From sequence record NC_061449.1: 64,000 nucleotides of DNA. The stretch is one strand, 5' to 3'. The translations under genes were made by a program, and so were the position numbers. This document shows positions 21,575 through 61,993 of the stretch, piece by piece. The stretch's first letter is position 1; every line of letters starts with the position of its first letter. The notes under the pieces are model-generated. The model did not search any database. It had not been told where the DNA came from and worked only from the letters and a program-made list of their open reading frames with translations.

Positions 21575-24500
21575 TTAGACTGATTTGTTTTTCGACGCGG
21601 TCAGTTTCAACTTGTCGATACCCTGAATCGCTTTCTTGATGTTCGTGATGGTGTAGCCAGCTTTCACAATCTTGTTGATTCGAGCTTTCGCACCAGCAGC
21701 GTTTTTCACGAAGCCGATCCACATACCCGGTGACAGGTCGAACGTACCGAACTTACGAGTGTTAGGCACTTTCGTTCCGACGAAGCGTTTCATCTGCGGG
21801 TTAGTTTTCAGGTCAAACATAATACGCAGACGATCTTCCATCACCATTGGATATGCCTTGACGTGTTTCTTGTCAGTGGCAGACTTGTGACGCACAAGGA
21901 AGAACTGCTGCAACTGCGACTGCAACTTGATGGCCAGCTTGTAGTTGAAGCCCATTCGAGAATGCGTTTCGTCAAAGCTATCCTGGATGAACTCCAGACG
22001 CTTCTCAGACATGCGGTCGAATGACAGTTTCTTACCTTCGATGAAGTCCAGCATTGCAACGAAGTCATCGTAGTACGCACAGTCGTAATAGACGTAATCA
22101 CCAAACTCGGTGAAGTCGAAACCTTTCAGAGCTTTCGCATCAGGGTCAGTCGCGTCAGCATACAGAGCAACGAATCCGTTGTACACTGTAGGCGTCAGCT
22201 CCAGAGCCATGTCTGCGCCGCCTTTGTCGTCAACAGGCGCGATGGTTCCAGGCTTAGCACGACGAGTAGTGTTGTCCAACACTTTCAGTTCAGACGGCTT
22301 ACGGCGACGAACTTTCTTGGCAGCTTCTTCAACACCTTCGTTGATTGGCTTACCAGTCTTTTTGTTCTCCACACGCTTGGCAACGCGAGCAGCTTTACGC
22401 GCCTGCGCTTCCACCTTCTTCTCTGTCTCTTTCGTGTCAGCAGTCTGCGTTTCGTCGAGAACGGTGTCCTCAACTTCAACACGGTTCGCTTCGGCGGTAG
22501 CGCGTTTGCGATCTTTCTCGTTCGCCCACGGCTTACGCTGTTCGAAGAAACGTTTCAGATCGTTCTTATCTACCTTGGTGGCAATGTGAACTTTCGTTGC
22601 AGGAACAGCAACGGTCTCACCAGAGCCCGCCAGACGAACACGAACGGTACTGATAGGACTGTCACCGCGCAGCTTACCATCGACCATACGAACAGTCACA
22701 GATACGACAACGCCGTTACCGAACTCAGTCACGACAGGTGCACGATTCAGAGAATCTTTCAACCCTTCACCGCTAGTGAAGTTACGGTTACGCGCCCAGT
22801 CCAGAATACGCTCAGTGCCCCAGCCGTTACGATCAGGGATCTTCTGGTTAGCAACGAGCGGAGTCTGCTCCATAACACGGAAGTCATTCAGAGCTGGAGT
22901 TGACGGCAGCGCTTGCATTGCTGCAATCGTTGTCTTACGCATCTCTTGGAACTCTTGTGACTCGATTTCGTTCAGGTCACGCTTCGCGAGGAAGTATGGA
23001 GCAAAGTCTTCCATCGTGTTATTGTCGATCAACAGCTTCGCGCTCATTTTGATCGGGTCGAGCTTGTACTGGTCGAGTGCTTCGTAACGCTGGTTGCCTT
23101 TCTCGTCAAAGCGAGTCTTCTCCAGAGTCTTCCACATCAGACGTGCAACCTTACCAACTTCCAAGGTCTTGTTCGTCATAACCCAGTCGATGAACACAAC
23201 TTCACGAGCCATGTCGCCCGGCTTACCATTCTCGTCCAACTTCGCAGCAGCAACGTCAGGACGGAAGATACGCGCAGTAGACTGATCGTAAGTACCAGGT
23301 GACCACGGAGTATCGCAGCGGATGATACGGCTACCCATCTGCATGTTGTGGCCTTCGGAGATTGCCTGTTCGTTCGCAATCAGAATCTGAACGTTGTTGT
23401 CAGTTTTGAATGCGTCGAGGTTAGCATCTTTGTTCTGGCCGAGCTTACCAACTTCACCGTGATACACCACAGCAACTTTCTTATAGTTGGCTGGCAGTGC
23501 GTTGTAGATGGCGTTTGCGGCACGAACGTAACGAGTGAAGACAATCAGCTTGCCCTGCACTTCTGGCTTCCAGTAATCCGGATCGTCCGGAGGCGGAACC
23601 ATTGAAGGCGGCAGCGCTTGACGCTTGAACTCTTCGGACTGCTTACGTGCCAGATACTTCTGACCGTTGTAGACAGCAATGTCCAGTTCACGCGGCTCTA
23701 CGCCAGGCTTCCATTCGAAGATCTGCTGCTCACCGAGCATAGGATCACGTTCAGGCTGCACTTCGAAGTGCTTCTTGATACGGTCGATGATGGTCAGTAC
23801 CTTCGCAGAAACGAAGTTCGTAACACCTGCGGCTTCAAACGTCATACGAGCAACGTCATCACCCATAGGGTCAGTCAACATCATCTCCATACGCTGGAAG
23901 TACATGTTCAGGTCAGCGTTACCCGCCAGCAGTGCGCCGAGGTCATCGCCTTCTTCGATTTCATCTTCGTCAATGTCAGACGCAGAATCACCACCATCAC
24001 CGCCACCAGCTTCGTCGTCATCGTCGTCGCCACCGCCACTTTTCTTCTTGGCGTTCTTAGCAGCTTCATCCAACTTCTCCAGCACTTCTGCGTACATTGC
24101 GTTGTACACTTCTTGGTGCAGAGCAGAGTTAGGAACTGACGGGTCATCGATCTCAACCTGAATGAAGGTATCAATCGGGTTCGGCAGCATGAACGCCCAA
24201 TGCTTACGCTTAAACGAAATGAACGCTGTATGGTTTGCCATACGTGAATGCGCACGACGAATCATTTCGATATCGTCTTTCGCGCCGTCATACGCAACGT
24301 CCAGTGAGTCACCGAACATAGCAGGCGTCATCAGTGCAGCCTGACCAACGATATCACGCACACGGTCAGTTACCAGCGTACCGGTAGCGATACGAGCATA
24401 GCGAACAGACGGAGCAGTGAAGACTGCTTTGGTGTTGAAGTGAACCTGAGAACCAGATTGACCACCAGAGAAGTTTTTCACTTTATGCGATTCATCGAGC

Positions 24501-27427
24501 AGCACGTAGCTGAACTTGAAGCGGTTAACGAACTCTACAGCACCACGCACACGAACACGCACACCGCCAATATCAACGTTGAACGTACCAGTTTGCAGAT
24601 AGCTCAGGCCGACGATGAAGATTGTGTTACGAGGCGACTGAGAGATCACATCGTACATACGTTCTTCGCCCCACGTGTTAACAGTGTCAGCAGTAATAGG
24701 CACTGCGTTCCAGCCGTTAACAATTTTGTGGAGGTCGTCACACCAGTTCGCTACGAGGTTAGACGGACAGATGATCAGAGGACGAATTGTTTCTTCACCC
24801 AGATCATCCAGCTCTTTGATAAGAGCAGCAATGTCGGTCAGACCGATAATCGTTTTACCGCCACCAGGTGCGATAAAGATTGTTGCGTAGCGCGGGCGGC
24901 GACGCAGAGTTTTATGCGCTTCGACCTGATGCGGCAGTAACGCTGCACCGTCTTTCAGACCCGGAATACGGATATCGTCAATCGTGATACCGCTATCAGG
25001 TTTCAGGCGTTCGATCTCAGTCTCAGCCGCTTCGAAAATCTCAAGAGACTTAGGAATCACATCGCTGTACATCGTAGCGAACGGCAGGATGATCTGTTGC
25101 AGACGGCCTGAGCCAGGAGCTTCTTCGGACTCGATCAGAGAACTGAACAGCTTCTTACGGTCAGCACGTACAAGCGCCTGTGACATTTCACGATACACAG
25201 CACCACCGAAGTAGTTGTTGAGTCGTGCCATATCAGACAGCTTAGACTTCTCACCCATCACGAAGTAGTGAGTGTGTGACGGCAGAGATTCGGTTGCAGC
25301 CGTAATGCTCCCCATCTCAGACAGAGAGGTTGCAATCAGGTTGGAGCCACGCAGACCGGCAGCATCGTTCAGCACACGAATCATGATACGAATCATGGTC
25401 AGTGCAGGACGCTCGTTCGACATATCAGGCACAGAGAAGTCATTAGCAATGAGATTCTCGTACAGACCGCGATCCATCGGGCTTTCTTCAAGGGACGCGT
25501 TCTCTGCATCCATGCCGATTGCTTTACGTGCGTTCTCCACCAGCGTTTTCAGGTCAGGAACCTGTTTGCTCTTGAGCATGAACTCGTAGGTCTGACACGT
25601 CTGCGCGATGATGTTCAGCAGCTCAGGCAGGTTAGAACCTTCGGTGGAGTTGTACTTGATCGTGGATTCACTCACACTCTCAATCAACTTACCATTACCG
25701 GATTCAACCTTGGCAGCTTCTACCATCGTGTCGAATGACGGGCGATACAGTGCCATGCCACCAGACGCTTGGTTGTGATAGATGTTGCCAATCACATTCG
25801 ACACAGAACGGAAGTTCGGTGCTTCACCAGGCTCTGCGAAGTCGTAGCCTAAAGCATCAGCAACGTCAAGCGAGTTCGGTGCTTTCATGCCGACAGTACG
25901 CGTTTCGTTAACTGCCAGACCGCCACCATTAGAGGTGTTTACGATCAGCGAGAAGTCAGGGTCGATGCCGATACACACGTCGCTGAAACGAGACAGAGAC
26001 TTAGCTTTCGCCTGAATGTCACGGTCGAAGTCCAGATTGTTGTTCTGGATAGCGAACATGTTGGTACGCAGCGTGTCGTGTTCAGTAGACAGCGGAACGC
26101 CTTTCTCGAACAGGTCTTCAAGCACACCGTTCAATGAGGTTTCGTAGGTCTTCACCATCTCAACGTCAATGTCTTCACGACGCGGCAGAACAGCCATCGT
26201 ACCGTTCGGCATGATAGTCATACCATTCTCGTCGGCGACCACATCGTTCACGGCGTAACCGAACTTTTCACGCAGCTTCTTCAATTCAGGCAGAGAAGTC
26301 GCAGACGTTACATAGCGCGGGATACGTGCAGCACGAGTGATACCTGTACGAGTGGAACCAGCAACGCGGAAGTAATAGCTCGCCCACCCCTGGAACCAAC
26401 GATACAGACACATGGTCTGTGTGTCAGCACCCTGAGAGATGTACTCAACCATCTCTTTCTCGAAGTTAACGATCAGACCGCCTTCAACGCGAACGTCGGT
26501 GGCCAGTGCTACTTCGTTGAAATCGACAGGAGTATCGTGACTGATCTTCATCGCCTGAATCTTACGATCAATCATCTGTTTCCCAGGGACTGAGCGAATG
26601 CCGATAGTCATGAAGTCACCAAGACCATCAACCACAGACTTATCCAGATTGCGGAACAGGTCGATATCAATGTTGTGCATTGACGGGTGAATAGAACGCA
26701 GAGCAGCGTTATACACGGACCAGTCTTTATCCAGAGGGATGCGCACCATCTTGGTATCGAATGCGTTACTGTTAGTACGCTCAACGCCGAAGATATCCTT
26801 GTACAGAGTCTTCGCTACACGGATTGCTTGCTGTGCAATGTCGGCACTGTAGGTACGCAGGTTGGCACTTTCGAAGTTGGCATCGTTATCAACGCGAGGA
26901 CGGTCGCTACCCTGATTGTTCAGAACGTTGAAGTTACCGTTCGAGGCAAGTGGGCTAGTCGGGCACGGGGTACCAGACATGATGATATCTTTACCGCCAG
27001 GGAAGCGCGTACTGTTTTCGATGATAGCACCAGAAGAGGAAGACAGGTGCTCGGCAAGAGCAGTCTTAATCTCACGGCTGAGCTTATCACCGTTCAGCAT
27101 CATGTTAATCTTGAGCGTAGCCGCATCAATGTTGTTCTTAACACGCTTAACGAAATCGTCAGGTGCAACATCCAGCATGTCCTCGAACTCTGCACCGTTA
27201 ATAACGATGTAGTTGATCAAGTCGAACGCGGCATAGATGCGAGCTACTGTTGACGCGGTGAACACTGCGAGGGCTTCGTAGTTACGACGAGACTTCCCTG
27301 TAGCGTACATCTTCGACATTTTAGCGTCGAACTCGGGCGGCAACGGACGAATAGCAAGCGCCTGATTAAACGTATCGGCGATTTGCTGAGTCGCTGTTGC
27401 TGACACACTAATCATCTGATTCATCAT
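21575..27427 (-). CDS. Giant SNF2/SF2-family helicase/translocase, 1950 aa
   Basis: Q motif 'LLPHQ', Walker A 'APGGGKT', 'LIICPSNLV.NW', 'LLDESHKVKN', 'ATGTLV', 'EGHNMQ' and 'W.P...DQ..AR'; ~800-aa uncharacterised N-terminal region. Confidence 0.85.
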   Translation of the reverse strand: MMNQMISVSATATQQIADTFNQALAIRPLPPEFDAKMSKMYATGKSRRNYEALAVFTASTVARIYAAFDLINYIVINGAEFEDMLDVAPDDFVKRVKNNIDAATLKINMMLNGDKLSREIKTALAEHLSSSSGAIIENSTRFPGGKDIIMSGTPCPTSPLASNGNFNVLNNQGSDRPRVDNDANFESANLRTYSADIAQQAIRVAKTLYKDIFGVERTNSNAFDTKMVRIPLDKDWSVYNAALRSIHPSMHNIDIDLFRNLDKSVVDGLGDFMTIGIRSVPGKQMIDRKIQAMKISHDTPVDFNEVALATDVRVEGGLIVNFEKEMVEYISQGADTQTMCLYRWFQGWASYYFRVAGSTRTGITRAARIPRYVTSATSLPELKKLREKFGYAVNDVVADENGMTIMPNGTMAVLPRREDIDVEMVKTYETSLNGVLEDLFEKGVPLSTEHDTLRTNMFAIQNNNLDFDRDIQAKAKSLSRFSDVCIGIDPDFSLIVNTSNGGGLAVNETRTVGMKAPNSLDVADALGYDFAEPGEAPNFRSVSNVIGNIYHNQASGGMALYRPSFDTMVEAAKVESGNGKLIESVSESTIKYNSTEGSNLPELLNIIAQTCQTYEFMLKSKQVPDLKTLVENARKAIGMDAENASLEESPMDRGLYENLIANDFSVPDMSNERPALTMIRIMIRVLNDAAGLRGSNLIATSLSEMGSITAATESLPSHTHYFVMGEKSKLSDMARLNNYFGGAVYREMSQALVRADRKKLFSSLIESEEAPGSGRLQQIILPFATMYSDVIPKSLEIFEAAETEIERLKPDSGITIDDIRIPGLKDGAALLPHQVEAHKTLRRRPRYATIFIAPGGGKTIIGLTDIAALIKELDDLGEETIRPLIICPSNLVANWCDDLHKIVNGWNAVPITADTVNTWGEERMYDVISQSPRNTIFIVGLSYLQTGTFNVDIGGVRVRVRGAVEFVNRFKFSYVLLDESHKVKNFSGGQSGSQVHFNTKAVFTAPSVRYARIATGTLVTDRVRDIVGQAALMTPAMFGDSLDVAYDGAKDDIEMIRRAHSRMANHTAFISFKRKHWAFMLPNPIDTFIQVEIDDPSVPNSALHQEVYNAMYAEVLEKLDEAAKNAKKKSGGGDDDDDEAGGGDGGDSASDIDEDEIEEGDDLGALLAGNADLNMYFQRMEMMLTDPMGDDVARMTFEAAGVTNFVSAKVLTIIDRIKKHFEVQPERDPMLGEQQIFEWKPGVEPRELDIAVYNGQKYLARKQSEEFKRQALPPSMVPPPDDPDYWKPEVQGKLIVFTRYVRAANAIYNALPANYKKVAVVYHGEVGKLGQNKDANLDAFKTDNNVQILIANEQAISEGHNMQMGSRIIRCDTPWSPGTYDQSTARIFRPDVAAAKLDENGKPGDMAREVVFIDWVMTNKTLEVGKVARLMWKTLEKTRFDEKGNQRYEALDQYKLDPIKMSAKLLIDNNTMEDFAPYFLAKRDLNEIESQEFQEMRKTTIAAMQALPSTPALNDFRVMEQTPLVANQKIPDRNGWGTERILDWARNRNFTSGEGLKDSLNRAPVVTEFGNGVVVSVTVRMVDGKLRGDSPISTVRVRLAGSGETVAVPATKVHIATKVDKNDLKRFFEQRKPWANEKDRKRATAEANRVEVEDTVLDETQTADTKETEKKVEAQARKAARVAKRVENKKTGKPINEGVEEAAKKVRRRKPSELKVLDNTTRRAKPGTIAPVDDKGGADMALELTPTVYNGFVALYADATDPDAKALKGFDFTEFGDYVYYDCAYYDDFVAMLDFIEGKKLSFDRMSEKRLEFIQDSFDETHSRMGFNYKLAIKLQSQLQQFFLVRHKSATDKKHVKAYPMVMEDRLRIMFDLKTNPQMKRFVGTKVPNTRKFGTFDLSPGMWIGFVKNAAGAKARINKIVKAGYTITNIKKAIQGIDKLKLTASKNKSV

Positions 27428-32011: not shown

Positions 32012-33118
32012 TCAGTCTGCCTTAGTGAGTCCCAGATACTCAATCAGATTGCGTAGCTGGTCGTTATACCCACCTTCAATAAGCGCTCGTGCCATTGCAA
32101 CGTGGTTAGAGTTCGCTGTACGCACTACCTTAGCCTGATACTCAGGAACGTTTTGCATGTTCTGGCTCAGGTTGTAGAAGTAGCTGCGCACGAAGTTGGT
32201 TCGCTCAACGTTGCTTGCTTCCATGTCGCTTGTGTCTTGCGTAGGAGTCAGCAGCAGATAAAGCGCTGCAAGCAGTTCAGGACTTTGATCAATGACAGGC
32301 GATGCCAGAGAAGCAGCAATCTTCATCAGGCCCTTCGCAACAAAATCAACCACAGTCTTTTCGACGAACTCCGTACCGGCTTTACCTACGTTAGGCAGAT
32401 AGAGGCCAGGCAAGATGAAGATACAGAAGTAAAGAGGAAAGTCTTTACGCATCACGTCGGGGATAAGCATCTCCGAGTAGTCTTTCCAGATGTTGATATT
32501 GAAGTGCCATTCATCGTAAGGCACAGTACGCATCAAGTTCGACACAGACAGGTCTTTCACAAGGTTAGCCTGCGATGCAAGATCGCGAGCACTCTGCGAA
32601 GGCGCAAGGTTAGAACTCGACACAAGCTGAACGTAGTTGCGTGTCACAGCACCTACAGTGTTGTACACAACGTTCAACATCTCAACACCGTTACCGTTCA
32701 GGCCAAAGATGACAGAACGAGGAAGACCGATAGTGATGTACTCGTTATTGTTCTCGACACCCCACAGTCTCCAGTAGCGACCACGACCCAGCTGAGTCAT
32801 AGGTGGCGGGAGAATACGATTAGCGCGAGGTTTCAGGCAGAACGTGAACGCAATGCCACTGTCAATCATGATCACTGAATCATCAGGACGATTCGAATAA
32901 CCCATCGACATGTTGTTGTCAGTGCTGAACACGTTTACCAGAGTGAAGTTCAGAGACTTTGTGAAAGGCATCTGCGCTTCAATCAAATAGCCGAGAACTT
33001 GACGGACGATAGTATCAAGCACATAAGGAGAAGCGTTACGCATTTGATTCGGACGATACTGCCCGCTATACGTATTCTCCTTGAATGTGCGATCTACCTT
33101 GAAGTGCGTCAACGCCAT
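32012..33118 (-). CDS. Hypothetical protein (probably virion)
   Basis: Coupled to 33118..34407 (TAATG). Confidence 0.6.
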   Translation of the reverse strand: MALTHFKVDRTFKENTYSGQYRPNQMRNASPYVLDTIVRQVLGYLIEAQMPFTKSLNFTLVNVFSTDNNMSMGYSNRPDDSVIMIDSGIAFTFCLKPRANRILPPPMTQLGRGRYWRLWGVENNNEYITIGLPRSVIFGLNGNGVEMLNVVYNTVGAVTRNYVQLVSSSNLAPSQSARDLASQANLVKDLSVSNLMRTVPYDEWHFNINIWKDYSEMLIPDVMRKDFPLYFCIFILPGLYLPNVGKAGTEFVEKTVVDFVAKGLMKIAASLASPVIDQSPELLAALYLLLTPTQDTSDMEASNVERTNFVRSYFYNLSQNMQNVPEYQAKVVRTANSNHVAMARALIEGGYNDQLRNLIEYLGLTKAD

Positions 33119-34407
33119 TACTTAACAGACTGTTTCAGCAGGCGTTTCTGTTGCGGGTTCAGGCCCATGACGTCTGCGATCTCGTCGATCTTACGCAGAG
33201 TCAGAACGCCTTTCGCAGTGCCACCGCTACCTGTCAGTGAGACTTTAACGAACTCACGACCGTTACGGCCAGTTACCATCTGATGCACGATGCTGTTCTT
33301 ACCGCCGCGACCTGCGCGAAGTGCGGTAGAGGCCATACCCAAGATTTCGGTAACAGCTTCTTTCTTCTCGGTAGGACTGAGGCCCGGAACCAGACGCACA
33401 TACAGGCTATCGTTCTGCACACGCACGTTGTCGAAGATTTCTTTCTTACGACCGCGAATGGTGTGTTGCTGATTGCCCAGCATCGTCGTGTCACGCAGGT
33501 TCTGCGTAGAACGGTTGATAGGCTTACGCTCGCTGTAGTTCAAGAATCCGTCGAGAGCCATCAGGTGGTTGATGGTACGCTTCATCTCTGGAGCAGTAGC
33601 AATCTGACGACCCATAGGGAATGAACCAGGGACTTTCTCGTCAACGAGTGACGTCAGGAAGTTTTCGCTGATACCGCTTGCGACCGCGATCGTGGTAGAC
33701 AGCACCAGAGCATAGTTCGGGTAGTGCATACCGTCTGAGTTCACGAAGTTATCAATGAACACATAGGTCTGGAAGCAGATAGGGTCGGTGCCAGACGCGA
33801 TGAAAGTACGAGTACGAATCTTCGAATAGTCTTCTTTATTCAGAATCTTCGACAGGTAGTTAGCGATAGTTGCAGCCAGCTTGGTGTGTTCTTTAGGAGC
33901 GCCGTTCTTAACGTCGATGCTCATAAGTTTAACCAGTTTGGTCTGCTGATCTTTCGCCTGTGCAATGACGTTAAGCAGGGACTTCGCTGCGGTGTTCTGA
34001 TCTTTGAACGCGCTGAAAGTTTTGCTGCTGAGAATCTGGTACGCAACAGACAGTTCGCCAATTGCCTGACTGAGTTGACTCACCTGATTGTTGTACTGCG
34101 CTTTGTTGCGTACATCGGTAATGTCAATCTTAGACAGGTCGATAACCTGATTCAAGTCAATCGCTTTTGTCTGCTTGCCTTTGATGGAGCCTTCGATATC
34201 GGACAGCTCAATAGCTTTAGCGCTGACAGACAGAAGGCGCTTAGGGATAGCGACGCTTTGTGCAGTCGCTACTACGCGGTCGAGCACGTTACGGAACTCT
34301 TTCGCTGTACGAGCACCGCGCAGGGCAGCCATGTTCCCAGAGCTATAGTCAACAGATGCGCTGATACTGCTAACTTCATTGTTTTTGGCAGTCTTAGCCA
34401 TGATCAT
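33118..34407 (-). CDS. Putative virion/head protein
   Basis: Strong codon bias; 'EVSSIS|AS' near the N-terminus; CTAATTTTT upstream. Confidence 0.55.
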   Translation of the reverse strand: MIMAKTAKNNEVSSISASVDYSSGNMAALRGARTAKEFRNVLDRVVATAQSVAIPKRLLSVSAKAIELSDIEGSIKGKQTKAIDLNQVIDLSKIDITDVRNKAQYNNQVSQLSQAIGELSVAYQILSSKTFSAFKDQNTAAKSLLNVIAQAKDQQTKLVKLMSIDVKNGAPKEHTKLAATIANYLSKILNKEDYSKIRTRTFIASGTDPICFQTYVFIDNFVNSDGMHYPNYALVLSTTIAVASGISENFLTSLVDEKVPGSFPMGRQIATAPEMKRTINHLMALDGFLNYSERKPINRSTQNLRDTTMLGNQQHTIRGRKKEIFDNVRVQNDSLYVRLVPGLSPTEKKEAVTEILGMASTALRAGRGGKNSIVHQMVTGRNGREFVKVSLTGSGGTAKGVLTLRKIDEIADVMGLNPQQKRLLKQSVK

Positions 34408-36437: not shown

Positions 36438-36495
36438 TACAGTCCACAGGTTTCTTTGACTGCTATTTACAGATACATGGAGTGTTTCACCGAAG

Positions 36496-36526: not shown

Positions 36527-38410
36527 TTACTTCTTAGCAGCAAGTCGTGCCCTACGCGCTTTAGCTTCGTCGCGCAGCTCGGCAACCTCTTCAAGAGCCT
36601 GAGCCATTGCGATCTCCAGTGCGCGATCACAAATAGCGTCAATGATTTGTTGAGGGTTCTCTTGTGTGTCGAGAAGCAGATACATAGGGTTCCCTAACTC
36701 AACTGCTTCAGGGTATAGTTCCTCACGCGCTTCCGCAATACACAACTCACCATCAATGTGGTACATGAGTCTAGGTATCTCGGTCTTCTTGAGCTTGTAC
36801 TTCTTATCCTCAAACATGGGGCGAAGTTTCGTGCGGAAGTCTTCGTGTGCGTCGATTGCAATGTATTTGTAACCGGCAAACACTTTCTTCGCAGCATTGA
36901 AATAGCGCTTGTCGATTATGGCCTTGTATCGTTCCATGCTCGCTTGATTAGCAGCAGGGCAAGCAGGAGCCATATTTGCCAACGAGCCGATAGCAGGTGC
37001 CAGAACGTATTCAGCATACAGACTAGAACTGTCCATATACTCCTCATCAACGTAACGGACCTGTACGCCACCAGTGTTAACGCGTGACGCATGGAACCAG
37101 AACATGCTTTCAGGATTCACTGAGTATTTAGCGAATGACCAAATCTGAGACAGCGCAGCAGGATAGGACCAACGCGTCAGATCATCCTTCCTCACACCGA
37201 ACAGATCAACTTCATCAAGGTTAGCGTCGAGGAAGCTCTTACGCTGTGCCTGTGGCAATCGGTCAATGAACATGTGCATTGCTCGCGTTTTACCTGATAG
37301 GTGTTGCCAAATTCTAGGCACGACAACATCATCAATACCGAACTTGTCAAACACAGTATCGAGGAACTGCCCGAACTCGTCATAACGCTTATCCCCAATA
37401 AGGGCAGCACTACAACGCACATAGAACTTAGGCTGTCCCCATTTCTCTCGCGCGAACATTGTAGCAATCTGAGGGTGACGGTCCAGAGCGTCAACAACAA
37501 TTTCCTCGTTGTTTGCAGCACGAGGCGCAGCAATAATGCCGCGAACAAACCCAGCAAGATCGCCTCGCATCAGCGGACTTTCAAGATCGTAGTTGAACTC
37601 AGTGCTACGCTGATCCGCATACAGCTTGCTACCCAGCTCATACATTCCCTTGCGCTCTGTGGCAGCGATGAAAGGATTAATGTGTTCGTCCAGCCAATCT
37701 TGCAGTACGTGAACGAAGGGCATCTTAGAATCTGGGTAGGCATACTCTACCAAATATAGCGCATTCACTTTCTCAGAGCCTACGAAACGTTCAGACGCTT
37801 TTGCTTTTGTTTGTTGGAAGTAAGGCTTAGCGAGGCAACGACCGATAGGCTTATTGATGTTTCTGTCCGAGGGATCAATCAGGTACGCGATCAACGTGCC
37901 ACCAGCAATGTCTTGTTTGACAAATCTCTTGTTCGAGCCTGTCTTCAAGTTCATGCAGCTCACCCACCCACGGTCTGTGGACATGCCTGCAATATCGTAC
38001 GGGTGCATTGAGATGCAGATAAGCTGACGGTTACGCGTCGCATTGACCATAGACTTACGGTTTGGGTCGGAGTCAAACATCTTCTTGAGTTCAGGATTCT
38101 TTGACAACACACGACCAATCTTAACGATACGCCCGTGCGTGTCTTTGCCTGTACCCGCAAGATAGTCAACGAGGACAATATCCTTTTCCATCAGAGCGTC
38201 AACGATTTGAATCGGAGGCTTGATATTCTGAGCGATATTCTTGATCACGTCGTCTGTCTTCGCGTCAATGTAGATGCGCATGGCCTTGTAGCCTTTCTTG
38301 CCGCTAATCTTTTCAAACAGATTCAGCAGTGTAATATTAGGCTTCCATCCTTTTCTGTACTTGCGGTACAGAGATGGAGGGAGAGCAGATAAACTGACTT
38401 GAATTTCCAT
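36527..38410 (-). CDS. Putative head-internal protein with MEIQVSLSA leader, 627 aa
   Basis: True start is probably the ATG at 38410 (MEIQVSLS; GAG RBS; CTAATTTTT ~28 nt upstream). Confidence 0.65.
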   Translation of the reverse strand: MEIQVSLSALPPSLYRKYRKGWKPNITLLNLFEKISGKKGYKAMRIYIDAKTDDVIKNIAQNIKPPIQIVDALMEKDIVLVDYLAGTGKDTHGRIVKIGRVLSKNPELKKMFDSDPNRKSMVNATRNRQLICISMHPYDIAGMSTDRGWVSCMNLKTGSNKRFVKQDIAGGTLIAYLIDPSDRNINKPIGRCLAKPYFQQTKAKASERFVGSEKVNALYLVEYAYPDSKMPFVHVLQDWLDEHINPFIAATERKGMYELGSKLYADQRSTEFNYDLESPLMRGDLAGFVRGIIAAPRAANNEEIVVDALDRHPQIATMFAREKWGQPKFYVRCSAALIGDKRYDEFGQFLDTVFDKFGIDDVVVPRIWQHLSGKTRAMHMFIDRLPQAQRKSFLDANLDEVDLFGVRKDDLTRWSYPAALSQIWSFAKYSVNPESMFWFHASRVNTGGVQVRYVDEEYMDSSSLYAEYVLAPAIGSLANMAPACPAANQASMERYKAIIDKRYFNAAKKVFAGYKYIAIDAHEDFRTKLRPMFEDKKYKLKKTEIPRLMYHIDGELCIAEAREELYPEAVELGNPMYLLLDTQENPQQIIDAICDRALEIAMAQALEEVAELRDEAKARRARLAAKK

Positions 38411-39895: not shown

Positions 39896-39904
39896 TCACG
39901 TTAT

Positions 39905-40834
39905 TTACAGATCAATCGTCCTGTTAAGTTGCAGATTCAACTGTGGTCGTGAGCCAGGCACAACAGGAGCAAGTGCAGACCAATCACTCTTGTTCAGCTT
40001 CATTAGATTGTTATCATCTATGTATATCAGGCCCAAATCTATATCCACAGTCTCTGTAGGTAAATCAGCAATGTAGGTGCCGCTAGCATCTTTTAGATAA
40101 TGCAGGCCATCATTGCGTGACTCACGCGCAGACACATAACCTGTCTGTGCCGAACGGAAATCTGTTTCACCTAAGGCATTGATGTACTCTGCATCAGGAG
40201 TTATTGACACAGTGGCTGTAGGCGTCAGATAGTCTGAGGTGCGGCCCTCTTTGATTATCATAGGCGTCTGCGAGTTGTACGCATAGGCTAGCGTCATGCT
40301 ATTATAGGTTGGTGGTCGAATCAGATAAGAGTACAGTTGCAGGTAAGTCAGACTCACACCAACAGACAGCGAGTTATAGAAGTTCGCTTGCGGCCAAGAC
40401 ATAGTAACCGTTAGACCCCGCTGAGAGAAATCAGTAGGGAACGGGACCATCGCGTTGTAACCGTTATTGTATCTATAGGCGGACGTCACCACAGTACCAT
40501 CAGTCGCAGCATAGGACGTCCATGGGCCACGAGTCTTGTTTGCTGTAGTCTGGGTTGCTGCAATGAAGTGCTGGTAAAAGTATCTCGTGTCTTGGGCATT
40601 ACTGTAACCATAGAACAAGTAGCGCAGACACGTCAGGTAATAGTTACCATTGGCGTGCTTGCCTCGTATCGGATTAAGAAATGAATCTTGGCCCATGAAC
40701 GCTCTGGCGTTTCTTAGATTGAGTCTAAGCATTCCGGTAAGCGTACTGTTAGATACGAAGGCTTCTTTCGATGTATCAAAGAAAGCAATCTCATGATCTT
40801 TAAGTACCAGTGTTGGCTTCAAAATAAGTTGCAT
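39905..40834 (-). CDS. 'MQY' paralog family member 2
   Basis: 'AFFD', 'ARAFMG...LNPIRG...YYLTCLRY' and C-terminal 'DW....VVPGSRP'. Confidence 0.65.
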   Translation of the reverse strand: MQLILKPTLVLKDHEIAFFDTSKEAFVSNSTLTGMLRLNLRNARAFMGQDSFLNPIRGKHANGNYYLTCLRYLFYGYSNAQDTRYFYQHFIAATQTTANKTRGPWTSYAATDGTVVTSAYRYNNGYNAMVPFPTDFSQRGLTVTMSWPQANFYNSLSVGVSLTYLQLYSYLIRPPTYNSMTLAYAYNSQTPMIIKEGRTSDYLTPTATVSITPDAEYINALGETDFRSAQTGYVSARESRNDGLHYLKDASGTYIADLPTETVDIDLGLIYIDDNNLMKLNKSDWSALAPVVPGSRPQLNLQLNRTIDL

Positions 40835-40874: not shown

Positions 40875-41240
40875 TTAGACCACTACTTCAAGTTCATGGT
40901 CACCAGAGTTCCAAACTAGTTCACGAATGTTGCGAGGCATGATGATGCAACCGCTTGATGCAGTACCCGGTGCTTTGATGCTATCGCCGTGCATCTGGAA
41001 TGCAGAGCGACCGAACATCACGTTCTCTTTTGCAGGAGTCAGGTCCATAGCATAAGGCCCAGTCTTCTGACTTGTGCGAGGTGCGTTGATTGTGTAACGG
41101 CCTTGAGGTAGAGGACCAGTGCCTACGATATTTTGAGAAGCAGGCTTGTTCTTATGCTCGCCTTTCCCTGCATAACCAGTAGCAACTACTTTATCGTTCT
41201 TGTCAGACAGGCGACCTGTTGACTGTTCATATTTCCACAT
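40875..41240 (-). CDS. Tlde1/DUF2778-family L,D-transpeptidase-like peptidoglycan enzyme
   Basis: 'GPLPQGRYTI' and 'GRSAFQMHGD......ASSGCII' (His...S-x-G-C catalytic motif). Confidence 0.85.
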   Translation of the reverse strand: MWKYEQSTGRLSDKNDKVVATGYAGKGEHKNKPASQNIVGTGPLPQGRYTINAPRTSQKTGPYAMDLTPAKENVMFGRSAFQMHGDSIKAPGTASSGCIIMPRNIRELVWNSGDHELEVVV

Positions 41241-42324: not shown

Positions 42325-42834
42325 TTACTCCTTAATCATTTTAACGCGTGTGTGGTCGAAGATACCGAAGGTAGGAACATCGTGGTGTTCGCCTTCATTA
42401 CCTTTGATTGAGTCGTACCCAGCAAGTTTGAGTATCTTGCTGATCTCGGTATACTCGTCCCACCACATATAGACTCGCTTGTACTGCGAGGCAGGTATGA
42501 GGTTATTCAGCGCGTCTAACCTTTTAACGAGAGTCATCGCCTCATCTTTGCCAACCAGATGCAACTGGAAGGCTTCCATGATAAGTTGCTTCACTCGTCT
42601 ATAAATCTCAGCGAACTTTACTTCCGTCCACAGAGAACGGAACTTCAAGGTAGCATAGCGACCTGGGTCCGCATGAAACTTGTAGAGGCGCCCACCTTCC
42701 GCATACAGTTCAGCATACGCACGATCTGGAGTTACCCAAGTCATGTGTTGCTTCTTCGCATGTTCATCAGACCAGTCTTCTGCAAGACCACGATAGTAGA
42801 TGGTAGGCGCACTCAGACTGACGAAGATTTCCAC
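42325..42834 (-). CDS. Putative ADP-ribosyltransferase-fold protein with MEIFVSLSA leader
   Basis: 'YYRG', 'WVTPD..YA..YA..G.LY.F' and C-terminal 'LKLAGYDSI......V..F.IFD...VK' match the pattern of phage ART-like domains. Confidence 0.6.
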   Translation of the reverse strand: MEIFVSLSAPTIYYRGLAEDWSDEHAKKQHMTWVTPDRAYAELYAEGGRLYKFHADPGRYATLKFRSLWTEVKFAEIYRRVKQLIMEAFQLHLVGKDEAMTLVKRLDALNNLIPASQYKRVYMWWDEYTEISKILKLAGYDSIKGNEGEHHDVPTFGIFDHTRVKMIKE

Positions 42835-42837
42835 AGA

Positions 42838-43794
42838 TTAATCTTTGTCGGTATCGTGGATGTCGGCTTCACCCAGAGAACGTTTGAAAGAGTCAGGAGT
42901 CAGACCATACTTGGTCATATCTGATTTCTTAACAACGATCTTCTTACCGTTTTTATTGGTGAATACGCCTTTGCCATTTTTAACGGAACCAGACCAGCCA
43001 GCTTTGGCGGTAATAGCTTTACCGTCGTTGAGTTCTTTCAGCATTCGCTTAGCCATGCGAGTGTCTTTATCCCACTGCTTGGATTGGGCTTGCAGAGACT
43101 GGCGCGCTGCATCATTTTTCTGACCGATGGTTTTGTGTTGCGTGGTTTTTGGTGTAGCTTTCTTGCCGAAGAGTTTAGCTTTCTCGCGCCCAATCTCAGA
43201 GGCAGTCACTTCTTTCTTCTTCGCACCCGGTTTGACTTTACGATCACTCGGAGAACTGGCGCGGCCTATTTCATCGAACTTCGCCTCCTTCATGAACATA
43301 GGCTTGAAGGTGCCACGTTTGCCAGTAACACCAAACTCAGTCAGCTTGGTAGCACGGATTGCTTTCAGCGCTTTATCTGCGCCAACGCCGGTTTTGATAT
43401 CAGCAGCAGACAGAGGCAGATTCAGACCACCTAGACCATGGGCTTTAGCAACCTTGTTTGCTTCACGCAGGGCAGCCTTAGCAGTTTTGATCTCAGAGGT
43501 AGCTTTAGCTTTCTCGGTCTTACGGGTGGCCATCAGCTTGGTGCGCTTGTCGCCGCGAGGCAGTTGACGAGCTTTGGTTGCAGCGGTGTTCGATTTGATG
43601 CTTGCATTGATACCAGCGACAGCCGCAGCCTTAGCTTTCTTCAAGTGACCAACAACAGCCTGCAATTCACTTTTCTTTGCAGAGTTGATTACAAGCACAG
43701 GCGTCTTGCCTGACTTAGCCATTTTGTACGCTGGTTTCTTCGCAGCAGACTCAGAGACAAGTGAATCTGCAATGTTAATGCGGATGAGAGCCAT
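42838..43794 (-). CDS. Lys/Ala-rich putative head-internal DNA-binding protein
   Basis: Very basic; 'VSES|AAKK' leader; N-terminal half paralogous to 43820..44395. Confidence 0.6.
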   Translation of the reverse strand: MALIRINIADSLVSESAAKKPAYKMAKSGKTPVLVINSAKKSELQAVVGHLKKAKAAAVAGINASIKSNTAATKARQLPRGDKRTKLMATRKTEKAKATSEIKTAKAALREANKVAKAHGLGGLNLPLSAADIKTGVGADKALKAIRATKLTEFGVTGKRGTFKPMFMKEAKFDEIGRASSPSDRKVKPGAKKKEVTASEIGREKAKLFGKKATPKTTQHKTIGQKNDAARQSLQAQSKQWDKDTRMAKRMLKELNDGKAITAKAGWSGSVKNGKGVFTNKNGKKIVVKKSDMTKYGLTPDSFKRSLGEADIHDTDKD

Positions 43795-43819
43795 GTGATT
43801 TCCTTAATTGAATATTGGA

Positions 43820-44395
43820 TCAAAGTTTAGGCTTGGCGCCTTTCTTGCGATCAGCTTCTGCGTCACGCTTCTTATCTATTACAGATGTAGCGCCAAACTT
43901 AGGCTTCAACGCAGCAGTCTGGGTGCCGTGAGTCTTAACGCGAAAGCGGTCGGTCTTGACGTTTTTGATCTTGCCTTCGGTATACTTCCAATCACCGACA
44001 GTGATATGGCTTACCAGAATAGGCATTTCAAGGCCAGACAGGCCTGCTTTCTTCAAACTGGCAGACGCATCACGCAATAACTGTTTTGCCTCAGCACCAG
44101 TAGATTTGGCAGTAACCGTCAGCGTTTTAATCTGACCTTTAAGCGTTGTCTTAGCTGCTTCGGTTTTTGCGCTACGCAGTTTCAATTTCGCAGCGTCAAG
44201 CATCTTACTCGCTTTCGCACACTCAAGACCTAGCTTTTTAGCCTTAGTCGTGTCCGAAAGAACTTTGGTTACAGTAGCTTTATGCTTCGAGTCGATAGCC
44301 AGGTTATAACTACCACCACCGACGTAGACAGCGTAGCCAGTTGTCTTCTTCGCGGCCGATGCAGATAACACCAGACCTATTGTAATCTTAGCCAT
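43820..44395 (-). CDS. Lys/Ala-rich putative head-internal protein, paralog of 42838..43794
   Basis: 'LSAS|AAKK' leader; 'A...L..A....K..GL.GL..P......I..G' shared. Confidence 0.6.
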   Translation of the reverse strand: MAKITIGLVLSASAAKKTTGYAVYVGGGSYNLAIDSKHKATVTKVLSDTTKAKKLGLECAKASKMLDAAKLKLRSAKTEAAKTTLKGQIKTLTVTAKSTGAEAKQLLRDASASLKKAGLSGLEMPILVSHITVGDWKYTEGKIKNVKTDRFRVKTHGTQTAALKPKFGATSVIDKKRDAEADRKKGAKPKL

Positions 44396-44404
44396 GATGT
44401 TTCC

Positions 44405-45010
44405 TCATACCAGCGCACGGCCGGGAAGATCGAAGTTTTTACCAGCCGAGTAATCACCCAGCGCTTGGTACAGGGAGTTGCGTAGCATCTGCTCAATGAT
44501 ATCTGAGTTGTGTGCCGAAGCGTCTTTGAAAGAGACCTCGATCGACTCAGTTCTCGGATTCACGACAGCGTAACGCAGCGGGCAGATCTGCTGCGCTTCA
44601 CACCATGCGTCTACTTTGATTTGCAGATCAGGTGTAATTGGTATGCGGAAGTCTGCGAGTTGGAACACAACGCTCTGGATAGGAGGAGGCGACGAATGCG
44701 ACATGAACTTACCATTCACATTCAAATGCTCCATAGCGTTTGCCGCTTCATAGATCGTTTGATAACCGTCACCTACTGTGGTGAGGCCACTGAGCTTGAA
44801 GCTATGCGTTGTCAAGCCTTTGCGGATCAGCTTGGCGATATTGACTTCATAATCACCAGAGTCATCACGCATGAAAGTGACGAACGCGTAGAAGGCGAAA
44901 CCATCTTCTTCGCGTAAAAGTTTGTGATCTAATACACGAAAGCCCACGACACTTTGCAGTGCCTGGGCTGTGATTTGCGTCGCCTTAGATAGGGAGACGT
45001 AGATTTCCAT
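44405..45010 (-). CDS. Hypothetical protein with MEIYVSLSK leader
   Basis: Shared leader; coupled to the upstream ORF (TAATG). Confidence 0.6.
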   Translation of the reverse strand: MEIYVSLSKATQITAQALQSVVGFRVLDHKLLREEDGFAFYAFVTFMRDDSGDYEVNIAKLIRKGLTTHSFKLSGLTTVGDGYQTIYEAANAMEHLNVNGKFMSHSSPPPIQSVVFQLADFRIPITPDLQIKVDAWCEAQQICPLRYAVVNPRTESIEVSFKDASAHNSDIIEQMLRNSLYQALGDYSAGKNFDLPGRALV

Positions 45011-45345
45011 TAACGCAGACGGGCGAGAGCTTTCTTAGCAGCAGCCAGAGTAGGTTGGATATCGCCTTCGTCGTCGAACTCACCTTCGAAACGAATGTCG
45101 AGACCAGTCACGTTGAAACCTTCGTCTTCATCTTTGGTGATGATGCCGAAACGAGCGGTGTCGCCGGTAGCGCTGATGAAACGCAGATCCAGAATGTCGT
45201 TCGGACCTTCTAAGTCAGACGGCATACCGTCGTCAATGATCTCGAACAGCGCTTTCTTGTCCATGCCCTTGAAGAAGGCGGACAGAGCAGCGGCAGCAGA
45301 TACAGACTTAACAGCGTCATTCAGATTCAGTTTGATAAGAGACAT
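45010..45345 (-). CDS. Acidic small protein with 'KSVS|AAAA' leader
   Basis: GGAG RBS; strong codon bias. Confidence 0.6.
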   Translation of the reverse strand: MSLIKLNLNDAVKSVSAAAALSAFFKGMDKKALFEIIDDGMPSDLEGPNDILDLRFISATGDTARFGIITKDEDEGFNVTGLDIRFEGEFDDEGDIQPTLAAAKKALARLR

Positions 45346-45347
45346 GA

Positions 45348-45920
45348 TCAGTTTACTCCAACTTGTTTAGTGATTGTGATAACACGCTGGTACCAACCAT
45401 AAATGTTATCTTCCTGAGTTTCGTCTGCCTTAGCGATGTTTTTCAACTTCGCAATACGACAACCGTTGTAGGCATAAGCCAATACTTTGATATCGCGTAC
45501 TTTGCAGTACGCATCCAGCGCAGCGATAGTCTTCGGACCAATGTTCGCAGCAGGTGCAAAGTCTGGATAGAGTCTGCCTCTGCTGTTTAAGATGTTCAAC
45601 TGGTCTTGCAGCTCCGCGATTGCTGCTGGTGGCCCTGAGTTAACTGCGTAGTCAAATACCCACAGCGCCAGTTCCTGGCTGTACTTCGCAAGCTGATCGC
45701 ATTTGCAGAAGTCCCAGAAGTTAGCACTGTAGATCGCATACGCAATCTCATACGGCAGGTCTTGCATAGCGCCTTTGTAGCCATAAGCGCGAGCATTCTT
45801 TTCCGTGACACCCCAACGTGTAGGACCGCCACGGTCAGCAGAGCGGTTAGTGTATTTCTCGCCACCTTCACGATCAATAACTTCCGCTATTGCTTTCTTT
45901 CGAAACGTCAAAGCGTCCAT
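45348..45920 (-). CDS. Glycoside hydrolase family 108 lysozyme with C-terminal PG-binding domain (endolysin-like)
   Basis: 'EGG.KY.N...DRGGPT.WGVT', 'FD.AVNSG' and 'IGPKT.AA', 'GW..R'. Confidence 0.9.
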   Translation of the reverse strand: MDALTFRKKAIAEVIDREGGEKYTNRSADRGGPTRWGVTEKNARAYGYKGAMQDLPYEIAYAIYSANFWDFCKCDQLAKYSQELALWVFDYAVNSGPPAAIAELQDQLNILNSRGRLYPDFAPAANIGPKTIAALDAYCKVRDIKVLAYAYNGCRIAKLKNIAKADETQEDNIYGWYQRVITITKQVGVN

Positions 45921-52220: not shown

Positions 52221-52317
52221 GGTTAAAGCCCAAGTATTGGTATTAATGATACTCGTTATTTACAGTTTTGATCGGTATAGACAAAAAGAAGGGCCACCAG
52301 CAATGGCAGCCCAATCT

Positions 52318-61360: not shown

Positions 61361-61993
61361 TTACTTTTTCTGCGAAACGCGCTTCCCTAACTTCACTCCA
61401 ATCTGCGTCAGAATGCGCTTAACGGTCTCTCCGTCATGCTCCGCCATAGCGTTTGCGAGCCTTTCGCCCTGTTCGCGCGATAGCTCAGGCATAATCATTT
61501 TAAGCATCTGCGAGCGCATTTTAGCAGACTTTGAGCGCCCTTTCGACGTTGAAACACCAGCCTCGTCGAGTTCCTCTGCTACGCGGCTCATGGTGCGCTG
61601 CACACGACGATCAGCGAAGATATCAGCGAATAAACTGCCGAACAACTGCTTAAAGTTGCCCTGTGCGTTAGGGAAACCTACCGTTTGTGTGCAGTGCGTA
61701 GATTCAACCTGATTCGTTGTGCGTCCACCAGCACGGAAGTTCTCGTCAGGGCGCGACGCTTTACCCTCTGCGCCCGGCTTAGTGTTGCCGTTACGCAGAT
61801 CAGCATCGCCTTCGACAGCTTTATCTGGGTCAAACATGTCGTCAGCTTTCGCGCTTTGATTTGCATCAAACGGAATCTTGCCTGTCAGCTTATTCGGGTC
61901 TGGCCAGCTATCTGGGATATCTGATGCAGGCTGAGGTTTGTTTGTCATATCACCGTTTGATGCGCCGTTCAGACTGATTTTAACGAGTGCCAT
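61361..61993 (-). CDS. Putative head/scaffold-associated protein
   Basis: AGGAG RBS; 'MALVKISLN' leader-like N-terminus; disordered middle, helical C-terminus. Confidence 0.5.
   Translation of the reverse strand: MALVKISLNGASNGDMTNKPQPASDIPDSWPDPNKLTGKIPFDANQSAKADDMFDPDKAVEGDADLRNGNTKPGAEGKASRPDENFRAGGRTTNQVESTHCTQTVGFPNAQGNFKQLFGSLFADIFADRRVQRTMSRVAEELDEAGVSTSKGRSKSAKMRSQMLKMIMPELSREQGERLANAMAEHDGETVKRILTQIGVKLGKRVSQKK

Follow-up and report, generated by a model that had tools for sequence, protein, structure and literature searches.

The 64,000-nucleotide stretch analyzed here (the window) corresponds to genome positions 124001-188000 of the Alexandravirus Erwinia phage pEa_SNUABM_17 (NC_061449.1; 263,916 bp), and its gene gp192 raises a double question: whether the encoded protein, annotated in the database only as 'hypothetical protein' (MPK72_gp192 / YP_010302651.1), is an ADP-ribosyltransferase (ART), and whether it is carried to the host inside the phage head. 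The gene is placed as follows.

42325..42834, minus strand: gp192 open reading frame (ORF), 169 codons and amino acids with a GTG start, encoding a stand-alone ART-PolyVal-type ADP-ribosyltransferase domain

The reading that best explains the whole of the observations is that gp192 is a leader-tagged, packaged and injected enzyme of the ART-PolyVal type, and to this reading we assign a probability of roughly 0.6. On this reading gp192 would be a compact, stand-alone ADP-ribosyltransferase dependent on nicotinamide adenine dinucleotide (NAD+), with an active site formed by R15, W33 and E147; it would be made late in infection, loaded into the prohead by means of its N-terminal sequence MEIFVSLS, ejected together with the DNA, and, as the next infection begins, would modify a macromolecule of the host. 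A function is thereby proposed for a conserved 'hypothetical protein' of phages of fire-blight and soft-rot biocontrol (Alexandravirus, Sasquatchvirus).

The GTG start codon lies 3 nt past the stop codon of the upstream gene gp193, an earlier in-frame start being impossible, and the start call is considered right because residues 1-30 are conserved among orthologues. These orthologues, with 74-96% identity, come from 37 phage records of Alexandravirus and Erwinia phage Y3 (Sasquatchvirus); a word-index homologue search with gp192 returned only such orthologues, of at least 74% identity. The motifs on which the sequence-only reading of this DNA had based its proposal of an injected ART are all found in the protein (MEIFVSLSA, residues 1-9; YYRG, 13-16; WVT, 33-35; YAELYA, 40-45; GYDSI, 139-143; E147; VPTFGIFD, 153-160).

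Is gp192, then, an ART? Direct family scans of the protein gave only a sub-threshold DUF7758 match in Pfam, no match in PHROGs and only noise in NCBIfam, and sequence and profile searches of PDB chains likewise gave only noise. The link to a described family runs through its relatives. An exhaustive phmmer search of 1.84 billion representatives with gp192 returned 85 proteins at E<=1e-3 (45 at E<=1e-10), many of which are stand-alone proteins of about 160-175 residues; in others the gp192-like region is a single domain within proteins of 2,291-4,935 residues, where the adjoining SLT, PBECR5, MuF_C and LPD39 domains are hallmarks of polyvalent proteins. Matches to PF18760 occur in 7 of the 38 aligned stand-alone relatives; P0011 (phmmer E 1.2e-25 to gp192) and P0013 exceed the gathering threshold of that model (31.2 bits) across the whole profile, and in the giant proteins P0020, P0030 and P0034 the very region that matches gp192 is called PF18760 (E 1e-11 to 1e-31). 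When the gp192 family was aligned by hhalign with 10 canonical ART-PolyVal domains, extracted from the proteins and loci gathered in the analysis, the probability was 95.4% (E 1.7e-8) over residues 9-165, with YRG falling on YHG. An independent placement is given by the language model of the ESM Atlas, in which the neighbours of gp192 are clusters carrying PF18760 and PF26151 (AcrIF11).

The structural evidence points the same way. AlphaFold2 applied to a deep alignment gave a model of gp192 with a predicted local distance difference test score (pLDDT) of 92.1 and a predicted template modelling score of 0.85, with pLDDT below 50 only at residues 1-7 (an earlier run on a shallow, ortholog-only alignment was poor, with pLDDT 59, and was not used). 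A Foldseek comparison, which the sequence-only reading had named as a check, ranks AcrIF11 (6kyf) first and a chain of the cyanophage A4 pre-ejectosome second among PDB entries, followed by many ARTs. In a search independent of Foldseek, covering 48,161 representative chains, every top full-length match to the model is an ART, with Z-scores of 7.2 for diphtheria-toxin homologues, 7.0 over 122 residues for AcrIF11 and 6.5 for PARP1/PARP2; the non-ART rows are aligned solely to the helical segment 70-142 of gp192. The cyanophage A4 pre-ejectosome (PDB 9k3a chain B, residues 1418-1601) reaches Z 6.9 over 123 residues. In the viral library BFVD, several of the matches at E 1e-6 to 1e-3 are named ART-PolyVal-like or PolyVal ADP-ribosyltransferase. 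As a separate observation, the paper describing the A4 pre-ejectosome structure mentions ADP-ribosylation 0 times, and the ART-like domain there may have gone unremarked.

The original assignment of gp192 to the ARTs is upheld by these results (phmmer, the PF18760 links, hhalign and the AlphaFold model), and its ART fold and ART-PolyVal kinship leave little room for doubt. ART-PolyVal domains are Tox-ART-HYD2-like ARTs found in the polyvalent proteins that phages and conjugative elements encode (Iyer et al. 2017, PMC5512222), and gp192 represents a divergent ART-PolyVal subfamily within the diphtheria/PARP-like H-Y-[D/E] clade; it is not a novel type of enzyme, the family having already been described. 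With the canonical members it shares homology, fold, the phage setting and the predicted role of an enzyme delivered with the DNA, and its own subfamily is also present as a domain of polyvalent proteins of 2,000-5,000 residues. It differs from them in being missed by the Pfam model, in having R15-W33-E147 in place of H-Y-D, in an insertion of ~40 residues forming two helices, and in being a stand-alone protein of 169 residues with an 8-residue leader rather than part of a giant protein or of a MuF fusion.

The same results bear on the comparison with T4 Alt that had accompanied the original proposal. Taken as kinship, this likeness is unsupported: no family match of the Alt/VIP2 type is found, and the nearest folds belong to the diphtheria/PARP/AcrIF11 clade. 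Membership of gp192 in the T4 Alt/VIP2 (R-S-E) clade, in miniature form, might be suggested by its strand-1 Arg, by the Thr two residues past the strand-2 Trp and by the sequence E147-G-E149, and such membership is nonetheless extremely improbable. None of the Alt, VIP2 or exotoxin families of Pfam (ART, ADPrib_exo_Tox and similar) matched at E up to 0.1; C3/VIP2 and cholera-type chains are absent from the top 50 of the 48,161 representatives, and a pertussis-toxin chain was seen only with Foldseek, as a weak and partial match (E 0.89, 95 columns). The apparent 'ExE' is unreal, as E149 varies (E/D/Q/L/A) among close orthologues, and R15 aligns with the His of H-Y-D domains, a residue that some members of the subfamily have at this position. 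Membership in the Alt/VIP2 clade was accordingly rejected on the family scans, the fold ranking, the variability of E149 and the WVT motif with its W33. The likeness of gp192 to T4 Alt is thus one of strategy, not of ancestry. Alt is an ART with a short N-terminal propeptide, of which 7 residues are removed (PMC9026906), and it is packaged in the head and injected, a strategy that gp192 would share; it belongs to a different ART clade (R-S-E-2, Alt/VIP2) and has no detectable sequence relation or closest-fold relation to gp192. The elements of gp192 referred to below are as follows. For scale, T4 Alt is about four times larger than this protein.

42811..42834, minus strand: leader MEIFVSLS (residues 1-8), disordered in the model (pLDDT below 50) and a candidate tag for capsid targeting
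42787..42798, minus strand: strand 1 motif YYRG, in which R15 replaces the strand-1 His of canonical YHG
42730..42738, minus strand: strand 2 motif WVT, in which W33 aligns with the canonical strand-2 aromatic residue (Tyr/Phe)
42700..42717, minus strand: helix YAELYA after strand 2, with A41 and Y44 at least 90% conserved
42499..42633, minus strand: insertion, residues ~68-112, with long helices 74-90 and 96-112, specific to the subfamily and lacking in canonical ART-PolyVal domains
42394..42420, minus strand: GYDSIKGNE, strand ending in the invariant E147, the presumed catalytic acid (from alignment and model)
42355..42378, minus strand: last core strand VPTFGIFD, with T155 at least 90% conserved and G157 invariant

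Conservation was assessed in the alignment of 38 stand-alone relatives, whose identity outside the genus is 27-39%. E147 and G157 are invariant, and R15, G16, W33, A41, Y44, R80, W124 and T155 are at least 90% conserved, so that the motifs cannot be put down to chance. Most of the proposed anatomy is borne out: strand 1 is formed by YYRG, opposite which canonical relatives have YHG, the YA..YA helix comes next after strand 2, and the GYDSI...E element bears the invariant acidic residue. WVT is indeed strand 2; its assignment as the Ser/Thr strand fails, since the conserved residue is the aromatic W33 and no S-T-S motif is found. In described ART-PolyVal domains the active site consists of a His in strand 1, a Tyr in strand 2 and an Asp in strand 5, and is set apart from that of T4 Alt, ModA and ModB, which is of the R-S-E type (PMC5512222). 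Within the present subfamily the strand-1 residue varies: among members in polyvalent proteins YHG is found in P0030, P0036, P0055 and P0064 and YRG in P0020 and P0058, the other features being common to all, so that the strand-1 Arg is not tied to a distinct architecture. P0030, P0036 and P0055 combine YHG with W and E, and P0020 and P0013 exceed Pfam's own PF18760 threshold yet carry YRG and E. From these alignments the H-Y-D triad appears to be typical of ART-PolyVal domains rather than strictly defining, R15, W33 and E147 are the presumed active site, and gp192 is probably a catalytically active ART. The two-helix insertion probably helps to select the target and is a candidate target-recognition module.

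Two alternatives concern the activity itself. In the first, gp192 is a catalytically dead ART fold with a structural or scaffolding role in the head or the ejection apparatus, as might be thought from the same fold in the solved cyanophage A4 pre-ejectosome (Z 6.9), to which its authors assign no enzymatic role, and from the fact that the canonical triad is not literally kept. The NAD+-binding and catalytic positions are, against this, the most conserved columns of the alignment (E147 invariant; R15, W33 and Y44 at least 90% at ~30% identity), and such conservation is unexpected for a purely structural domain; this alternative is therefore judged quite improbable. In the second, gp192 is packaged and its substrate is nucleic acid or NAD+ itself (DarT-like modification of DNA or RNA, KptA-like chemistry or NAD+ depletion). 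With an Arg in strand 1 and a Trp in strand 2, gp192 departs from the H-Y-D pattern of protein-modifying enzymes (PMC5512222), KptA, the RES toxin, ParT, MbcT and Arr are found lower in the structural lists, and the gene stands beside those of very basic, probably DNA-binding proteins. Nevertheless it is ARTs acting on proteins that match the model best and over the greatest length, close relatives with a strand-1 His have all other features of the subfamily, and the KptA alignments span only about 57-70 residues. A protein is the more likely target of gp192 than a nucleic acid, and the second alternative is unlikely, if less so than a dead enzyme.

Is the enzyme delivered with the phage DNA? 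The evidence begins with the leader. The sequence MEI-x-VSLS starts 7 ORFs of the genome, namely gp185, gp192, gp195, gp207, gp208 and two outside the window, and these cargo proteins have no common family. The synonymous codons differ among the ORFs, and the leader is therefore conserved at the level of the peptide; the MEIFVSLSA leader noticed in the first reading is thus real. The genes in the window that carry a leader, apart from gp192, are the following.

42838..45345, minus strand: gp193-gp196, four leader-bearing genes directly upstream of gp192 and in the same orientation, just downstream of endolysin gp197; gp195 starts MEIYVSLS
36527..38410, minus strand: gp185, 627 amino acids, starting MEIQVSLS, homologue of gp394 of Agrobacterium phage Atu_ph07
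52318..53435, minus strand: leader bearers gp207 (MEIKVSLS) and gp208 (MEIFVSLS)
42838-43794, 43820-44395, 45010-45345 and 61361-61993, minus strand: four ORFs with a second type of leader, of which three adjoin the ART gene (gp193, gp194 and gp196)

This second leader type has the form M-[AS]-[LK]-[IV]-x-[IL]-x-[LI] (MALIRINI, MAKITIGL, MSLIKLNL, MALVKISL). Two of its bearers, gp193 and gp194, are Lys/Ala-rich with isoelectric points above 10 and resemble internal proteins or DNA-binding proteins of phages. Beyond the window, an ORF of 105 residues starting MEILVSLS (L008:5742-6059, plus strand; genome 199241-199558) has a sub-threshold match to the Csm6 HEPN family (PF09670, E 6.3e-5, 23.2 bits vs a cut-off of 27), and this ORF may encode a tagged RNase-like cargo. 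In two further proteins encoded in the window the start contains an I-S-x-S-A core resembling the final part of the MEIxVSLS leader, namely an SNF2-type helicase of 1,950 residues (21575-27427, minus strand; start MMNQMISVSATA) and gp182 (33118-34407, minus strand; start MIMAKTAKNNEVSSISAS).

Comparison with phages outside the genus is more telling as to what such leaders do. The stand-alone homologues of gp192 have N-termini that differ by phage lineage and always stand directly before strand 1. Five homologues with 33-40% identity to gp192 have starts of the MxIxVSLS type (P0012, MKIFVSLA; P0017, MQIQLSLS; P0018, MRIIISLS; P0025, MKLILSMS; P0027, MKVYVSVA). The jumbo-phage contig L010, of 230 kb, has a canonical PF18760 ART with the start MKIQLSMS, followed by a gp192 homologue with the start MQIQLSLS; next come an untagged ORF of 136 residues, which overlaps that homologue's end, a third tagged gene (MKIQLSIS), and two large genes that start MLHISTSALKPSQYR and MINISTSALKPSQYR and resemble gp185 of the present phage (MEIQVSLSALPPSLYR).

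About a dozen other gp192 homologues have starts of the T4 type (MKTFKQFITE in P0059, MKSFSQFINE in P0015, MITFSQFISE in P0014 and similar). In the T4 record (NC_000866) the internal proteins IPII and IPIII start MKTYQEFIAE and IPI starts MKTFKEFTST; the first 10 residues of IPIII are an experimentally defined capsid-targeting sequence, in which residues 4 and 7 serve targeting and residues 8 and 10 serve cleavage (PMC9026906), and the tag is the sole feature shared by the internal proteins of T-even phages (PMC3012670). The homologues with such starts lie on T4-like contigs, P0014 behind a gp5-like gene and among homologues of gp2, gp53, gp25 and gp6 by the gene calls, and P0059 among the genes for Gp23, Portal_T4, sheath and gp19. 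On L005, a T4-like metagenome contig from the Joint Genome Institute, 7 neighbouring genes, 6 of them consecutive, carry the T4-type tag (MKTFKQFI.E and variants), including P0059 and an adjacent canonical PF18760 ART; on L003 the tag is common to the ART homologue and a GNAT acetyltransferase. The tagged group of L005 (10001-13538 and 15615-15980) stands between tail-sheath and portal genes and constitutes a large array of internal proteins. The contexts of the homologues were taken from metagenome contigs because P0015 and P0017, both distant homologues, gave Alexandravirus and Y3 only when compared with cultured phages by tblastn; a search of IMG/VR with the single proteins P0014 and P0012 found nothing.

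These N-termini show that the ART family has been cargo to N-terminal address tags time and again, one such tag having been proven by experiment, and that phage lineages have exchanged the tags in modular fashion while keeping the cargo. By analogy, MEIFVSLS is most likely a lineage-specific capsid-targeting leader, the counterpart of MKTYQEFIAE in T4. The set of tagged proteins resembles IPI, IPII and IPIII in comprising small, diverse and fast-evolving cargo that shares only an N-terminal tag of ~10 residues, and the T4-type tag is itself present on the gp192 homologues of T4-like phages; MEIxVSLS of Alexandravirus differs in being unrelated in sequence and in lacking the Glu (position 10 in T4) at which gp21 of T4 cleaves.

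A second line of comparison comes from the measured virion proteome of another jumbo phage. Among the BFVD matches to the fold of the gp192 model is AUZ95140.1, a 170-residue protein of Atu_ph07 that starts MKWQDLSE, with IKVYHGS immediately next. Its direct profile comparison with the gp192 family is weak (hhalign probability 18%); it is assigned to the ARTs because it aligns with the canonical ART-PolyVal set (hhalign probability 89.9%), has a sub-threshold PF18760 match (E 1.5e-4) and matches in fold. The gene numbers of GenBank were mapped to those of the published paper on this phage by five exact matches of molecular weight and two of gene length, which identifies AUZ95140.1 as gp381. 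In the published supplementary virion proteome, obtained by electrospray ionization tandem mass spectrometry (ESI-MS/MS) of purified virions, gp381 is listed at 20.00 kDa with 2 peptides and 15.9% coverage. It is like gp192 in being an ART-PolyVal-like protein of similar length, with an 8-residue lineage-specific leader right before strand 1, and was detected in virions; it differs in being of the canonical His type, lacking the insertion of the subfamily and being distant from gp192, and its detection consists of two peptides only. The same proteome holds Atu_ph07 gp394 as an abundant virion protein (18 peptides), and gp394 is homologous to gp185 of the present phage (BLASTP 2e-30), the alignment running from residue 7 of both proteins, right past their differing leaders. 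Proteins tagged in this manner, an ART-PolyVal-like one and a homologue of the co-tagged gp185, thus occur in the virions of another jumbo phage. The large-protein family to which gp185, Atu_ph07 gp394 (L016:9048-10502) and L010:11736-16592 belong has the motif ALKPS.YR.[FY] right after its leaders, which are MEIQVSLS, MQYTDLIE, MLHISTS and MINISTS.

For delivery by the leader, as the sequence-only reading had supposed, the comparative support is accordingly strong (the T4-type tags and the Atu_ph07 virion proteome), and for pEa_SNUABM_17 itself it is by analogy that packaging and injection of gp192 through its leader can be regarded as somewhat better than an even chance. The alternative that deserves most attention here is that gp192 is an active ART that is not packaged and acts inside the infected cell, either against host defence in the manner of AcrIF11, with a CRISPR or other immune protein as target, for example, or in the manner of T4 ModA/ModB, MEIxVSLS then serving stability, localisation or translation. 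AcrIF11 inhibits type I-F CRISPR-Cas by ADP-ribosylating Cas8f. It is the top Foldseek match in the PDB and tied in Z with the best, its family PF26151 is carried by the Atlas neighbours, and it is, like gp192, a small stand-alone phage ART of similar size, with a variable helical region proposed to confer target specificity (6KYF). The differences are that PF26151 has no match on gp192 at E up to 0.1, that the key residues are H-F-H-D vs R-W-E, so that the similarity is one of fold only, and that AcrIF11 itself is not known to bear a packaging leader. A gp192 neighbourhood that is not purely structural and the lack of virion information in the Y3 annotation would also suit an unpackaged enzyme. 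What speaks for packaging is that in T4-like phages the subfamily bears the T4-type sequence proven to target proteins to the capsid and is encoded within arrays of likewise tagged genes, that lineage-matched leaders occur in two other phage groups, and that a tagged ART-like protein and a homologue of a co-tagged protein are present in a measured virion proteome. An unpackaged enzyme is on this evidence possible but rather unlikely.

Several observations nonetheless weigh against a packaged and active enzyme of the ART-PolyVal type. Regarding the family, PF18760 has no match on gp192 (Pfam scan, E up to 0.1), and none was obtained when the phage's own genome was searched in six frames (E up to 10). 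The structural Z-scores of about 7 are modest and in a range that can be non-specific alone; the fold is called because consistent ART matches, the sequence link and the matches in the viral library stand together. At the aligned positions the canonical H-Y-D triad is replaced by R15-W33-E147, and the clustering of these three residues in one pocket is suggested by alignment rather than by geometry. Regarding the leader, MEIxVSLS has no Glu past position 2 and ends in S-L-S, unlike the cleavage rule of T4, phiKZ and SPN3US, and the T4 gp21-type protease family (PF03420) is unmatched in the phage genome; because of both facts, any processing of the leader would follow a rule other than that of T4. 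Regarding timing and location, the neighbourhood of gp192 mixes DNA-metabolism genes (SbcC/D) with lysis and structural genes, so that this context, although compatible with a packaged enzyme, is not decisive and does not by itself show late expression. The search of sequencing runs gave metagenomes and metatranscriptome contigs only and no infection time course, and the GenBank annotation of the Y3 orthologue gives no virion information.

Within this mixed neighbourhood, an unbroken run of five tagged genes (gp196, gp195, gp194, gp193 and gp192) begins just downstream of endolysin gp197 (45348-45920). The order e, ipIII, ipII on the T4 map parallels this succession of an endolysin and tagged genes, and the parallel may be coincidence or a conserved late-operon layout.

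How much of this is new can be stated with some precision. The packaging of an ART in the phage head (T4 Alt) has been described, as have ART-PolyVal domains for which injection is predicted (PMC5512222, PMC9503650). In the two jumbo-phage surveys searched, Alexandra-type phages are unmentioned. What is new is a subfamily missed by the curated model, with R-W-E and the helical insertion and in a minimal stand-alone form, and the short lineage-specific leaders that this subfamily carries in place of fusion to a giant protein. The ART-PolyVal family is thereby extended to members that the curated Pfam model does not detect. A more ambitious reading is that one ART subfamily has repeatedly been re-addressed by lineage tags, that jumbo phages of the Alexandravirus/Sasquatchvirus type have in MEIxVSLS a portable capsid-targeting signal not described before, and that gp192 is injected and has a host target other than those of known phage ARTs; we hold this tentatively, at slightly less than even odds. 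If so, the re-addressing tags would include MKTFKQFITE of the T4 type and MxIxVSLS of jumbo phages, with MKWxDLxE of the Atu_ph07 type on a related ART-PolyVal-like protein, and the unusual R-W-E site together with the helical insertion would give gp192 its distinct host target.

gp192 is of value mainly as a tracer, lending support to a candidate system of capsid targeting in jumbo phages: the same cargo with the proven T4 tag and with the differing tags of two jumbo-phage lineages is independent support for regarding these sequences as address labels. If this is true, the sets of injected proteins could be read from genomes, and foreign proteins could be brought into the heads of jumbo phages by means of the tag. 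The target of so small an injected ART in Erwinia or Dickeya would show how the host is taken over or disarmed in the first minutes of infection.

Two minor observations concern the rest of the window. The sequence CTGTAAAYA occurs at 11 sites, all on the minus strand and in gene orientation (e.g. 39902-39910, 36464-36472, 52257-52265), vs about 1 expected, which fits a phage promoter element; none of the 11 sites in the window is directly upstream of gp192. The gene gp189 (40875-41240, minus strand; 121 residues), which sits between two members of a paralogous 'MQY' gene family, encodes a Tlde1/L,D-transpeptidase-like domain (PF10908, E 1.5e-17; YkuD, E 2.4e-4).

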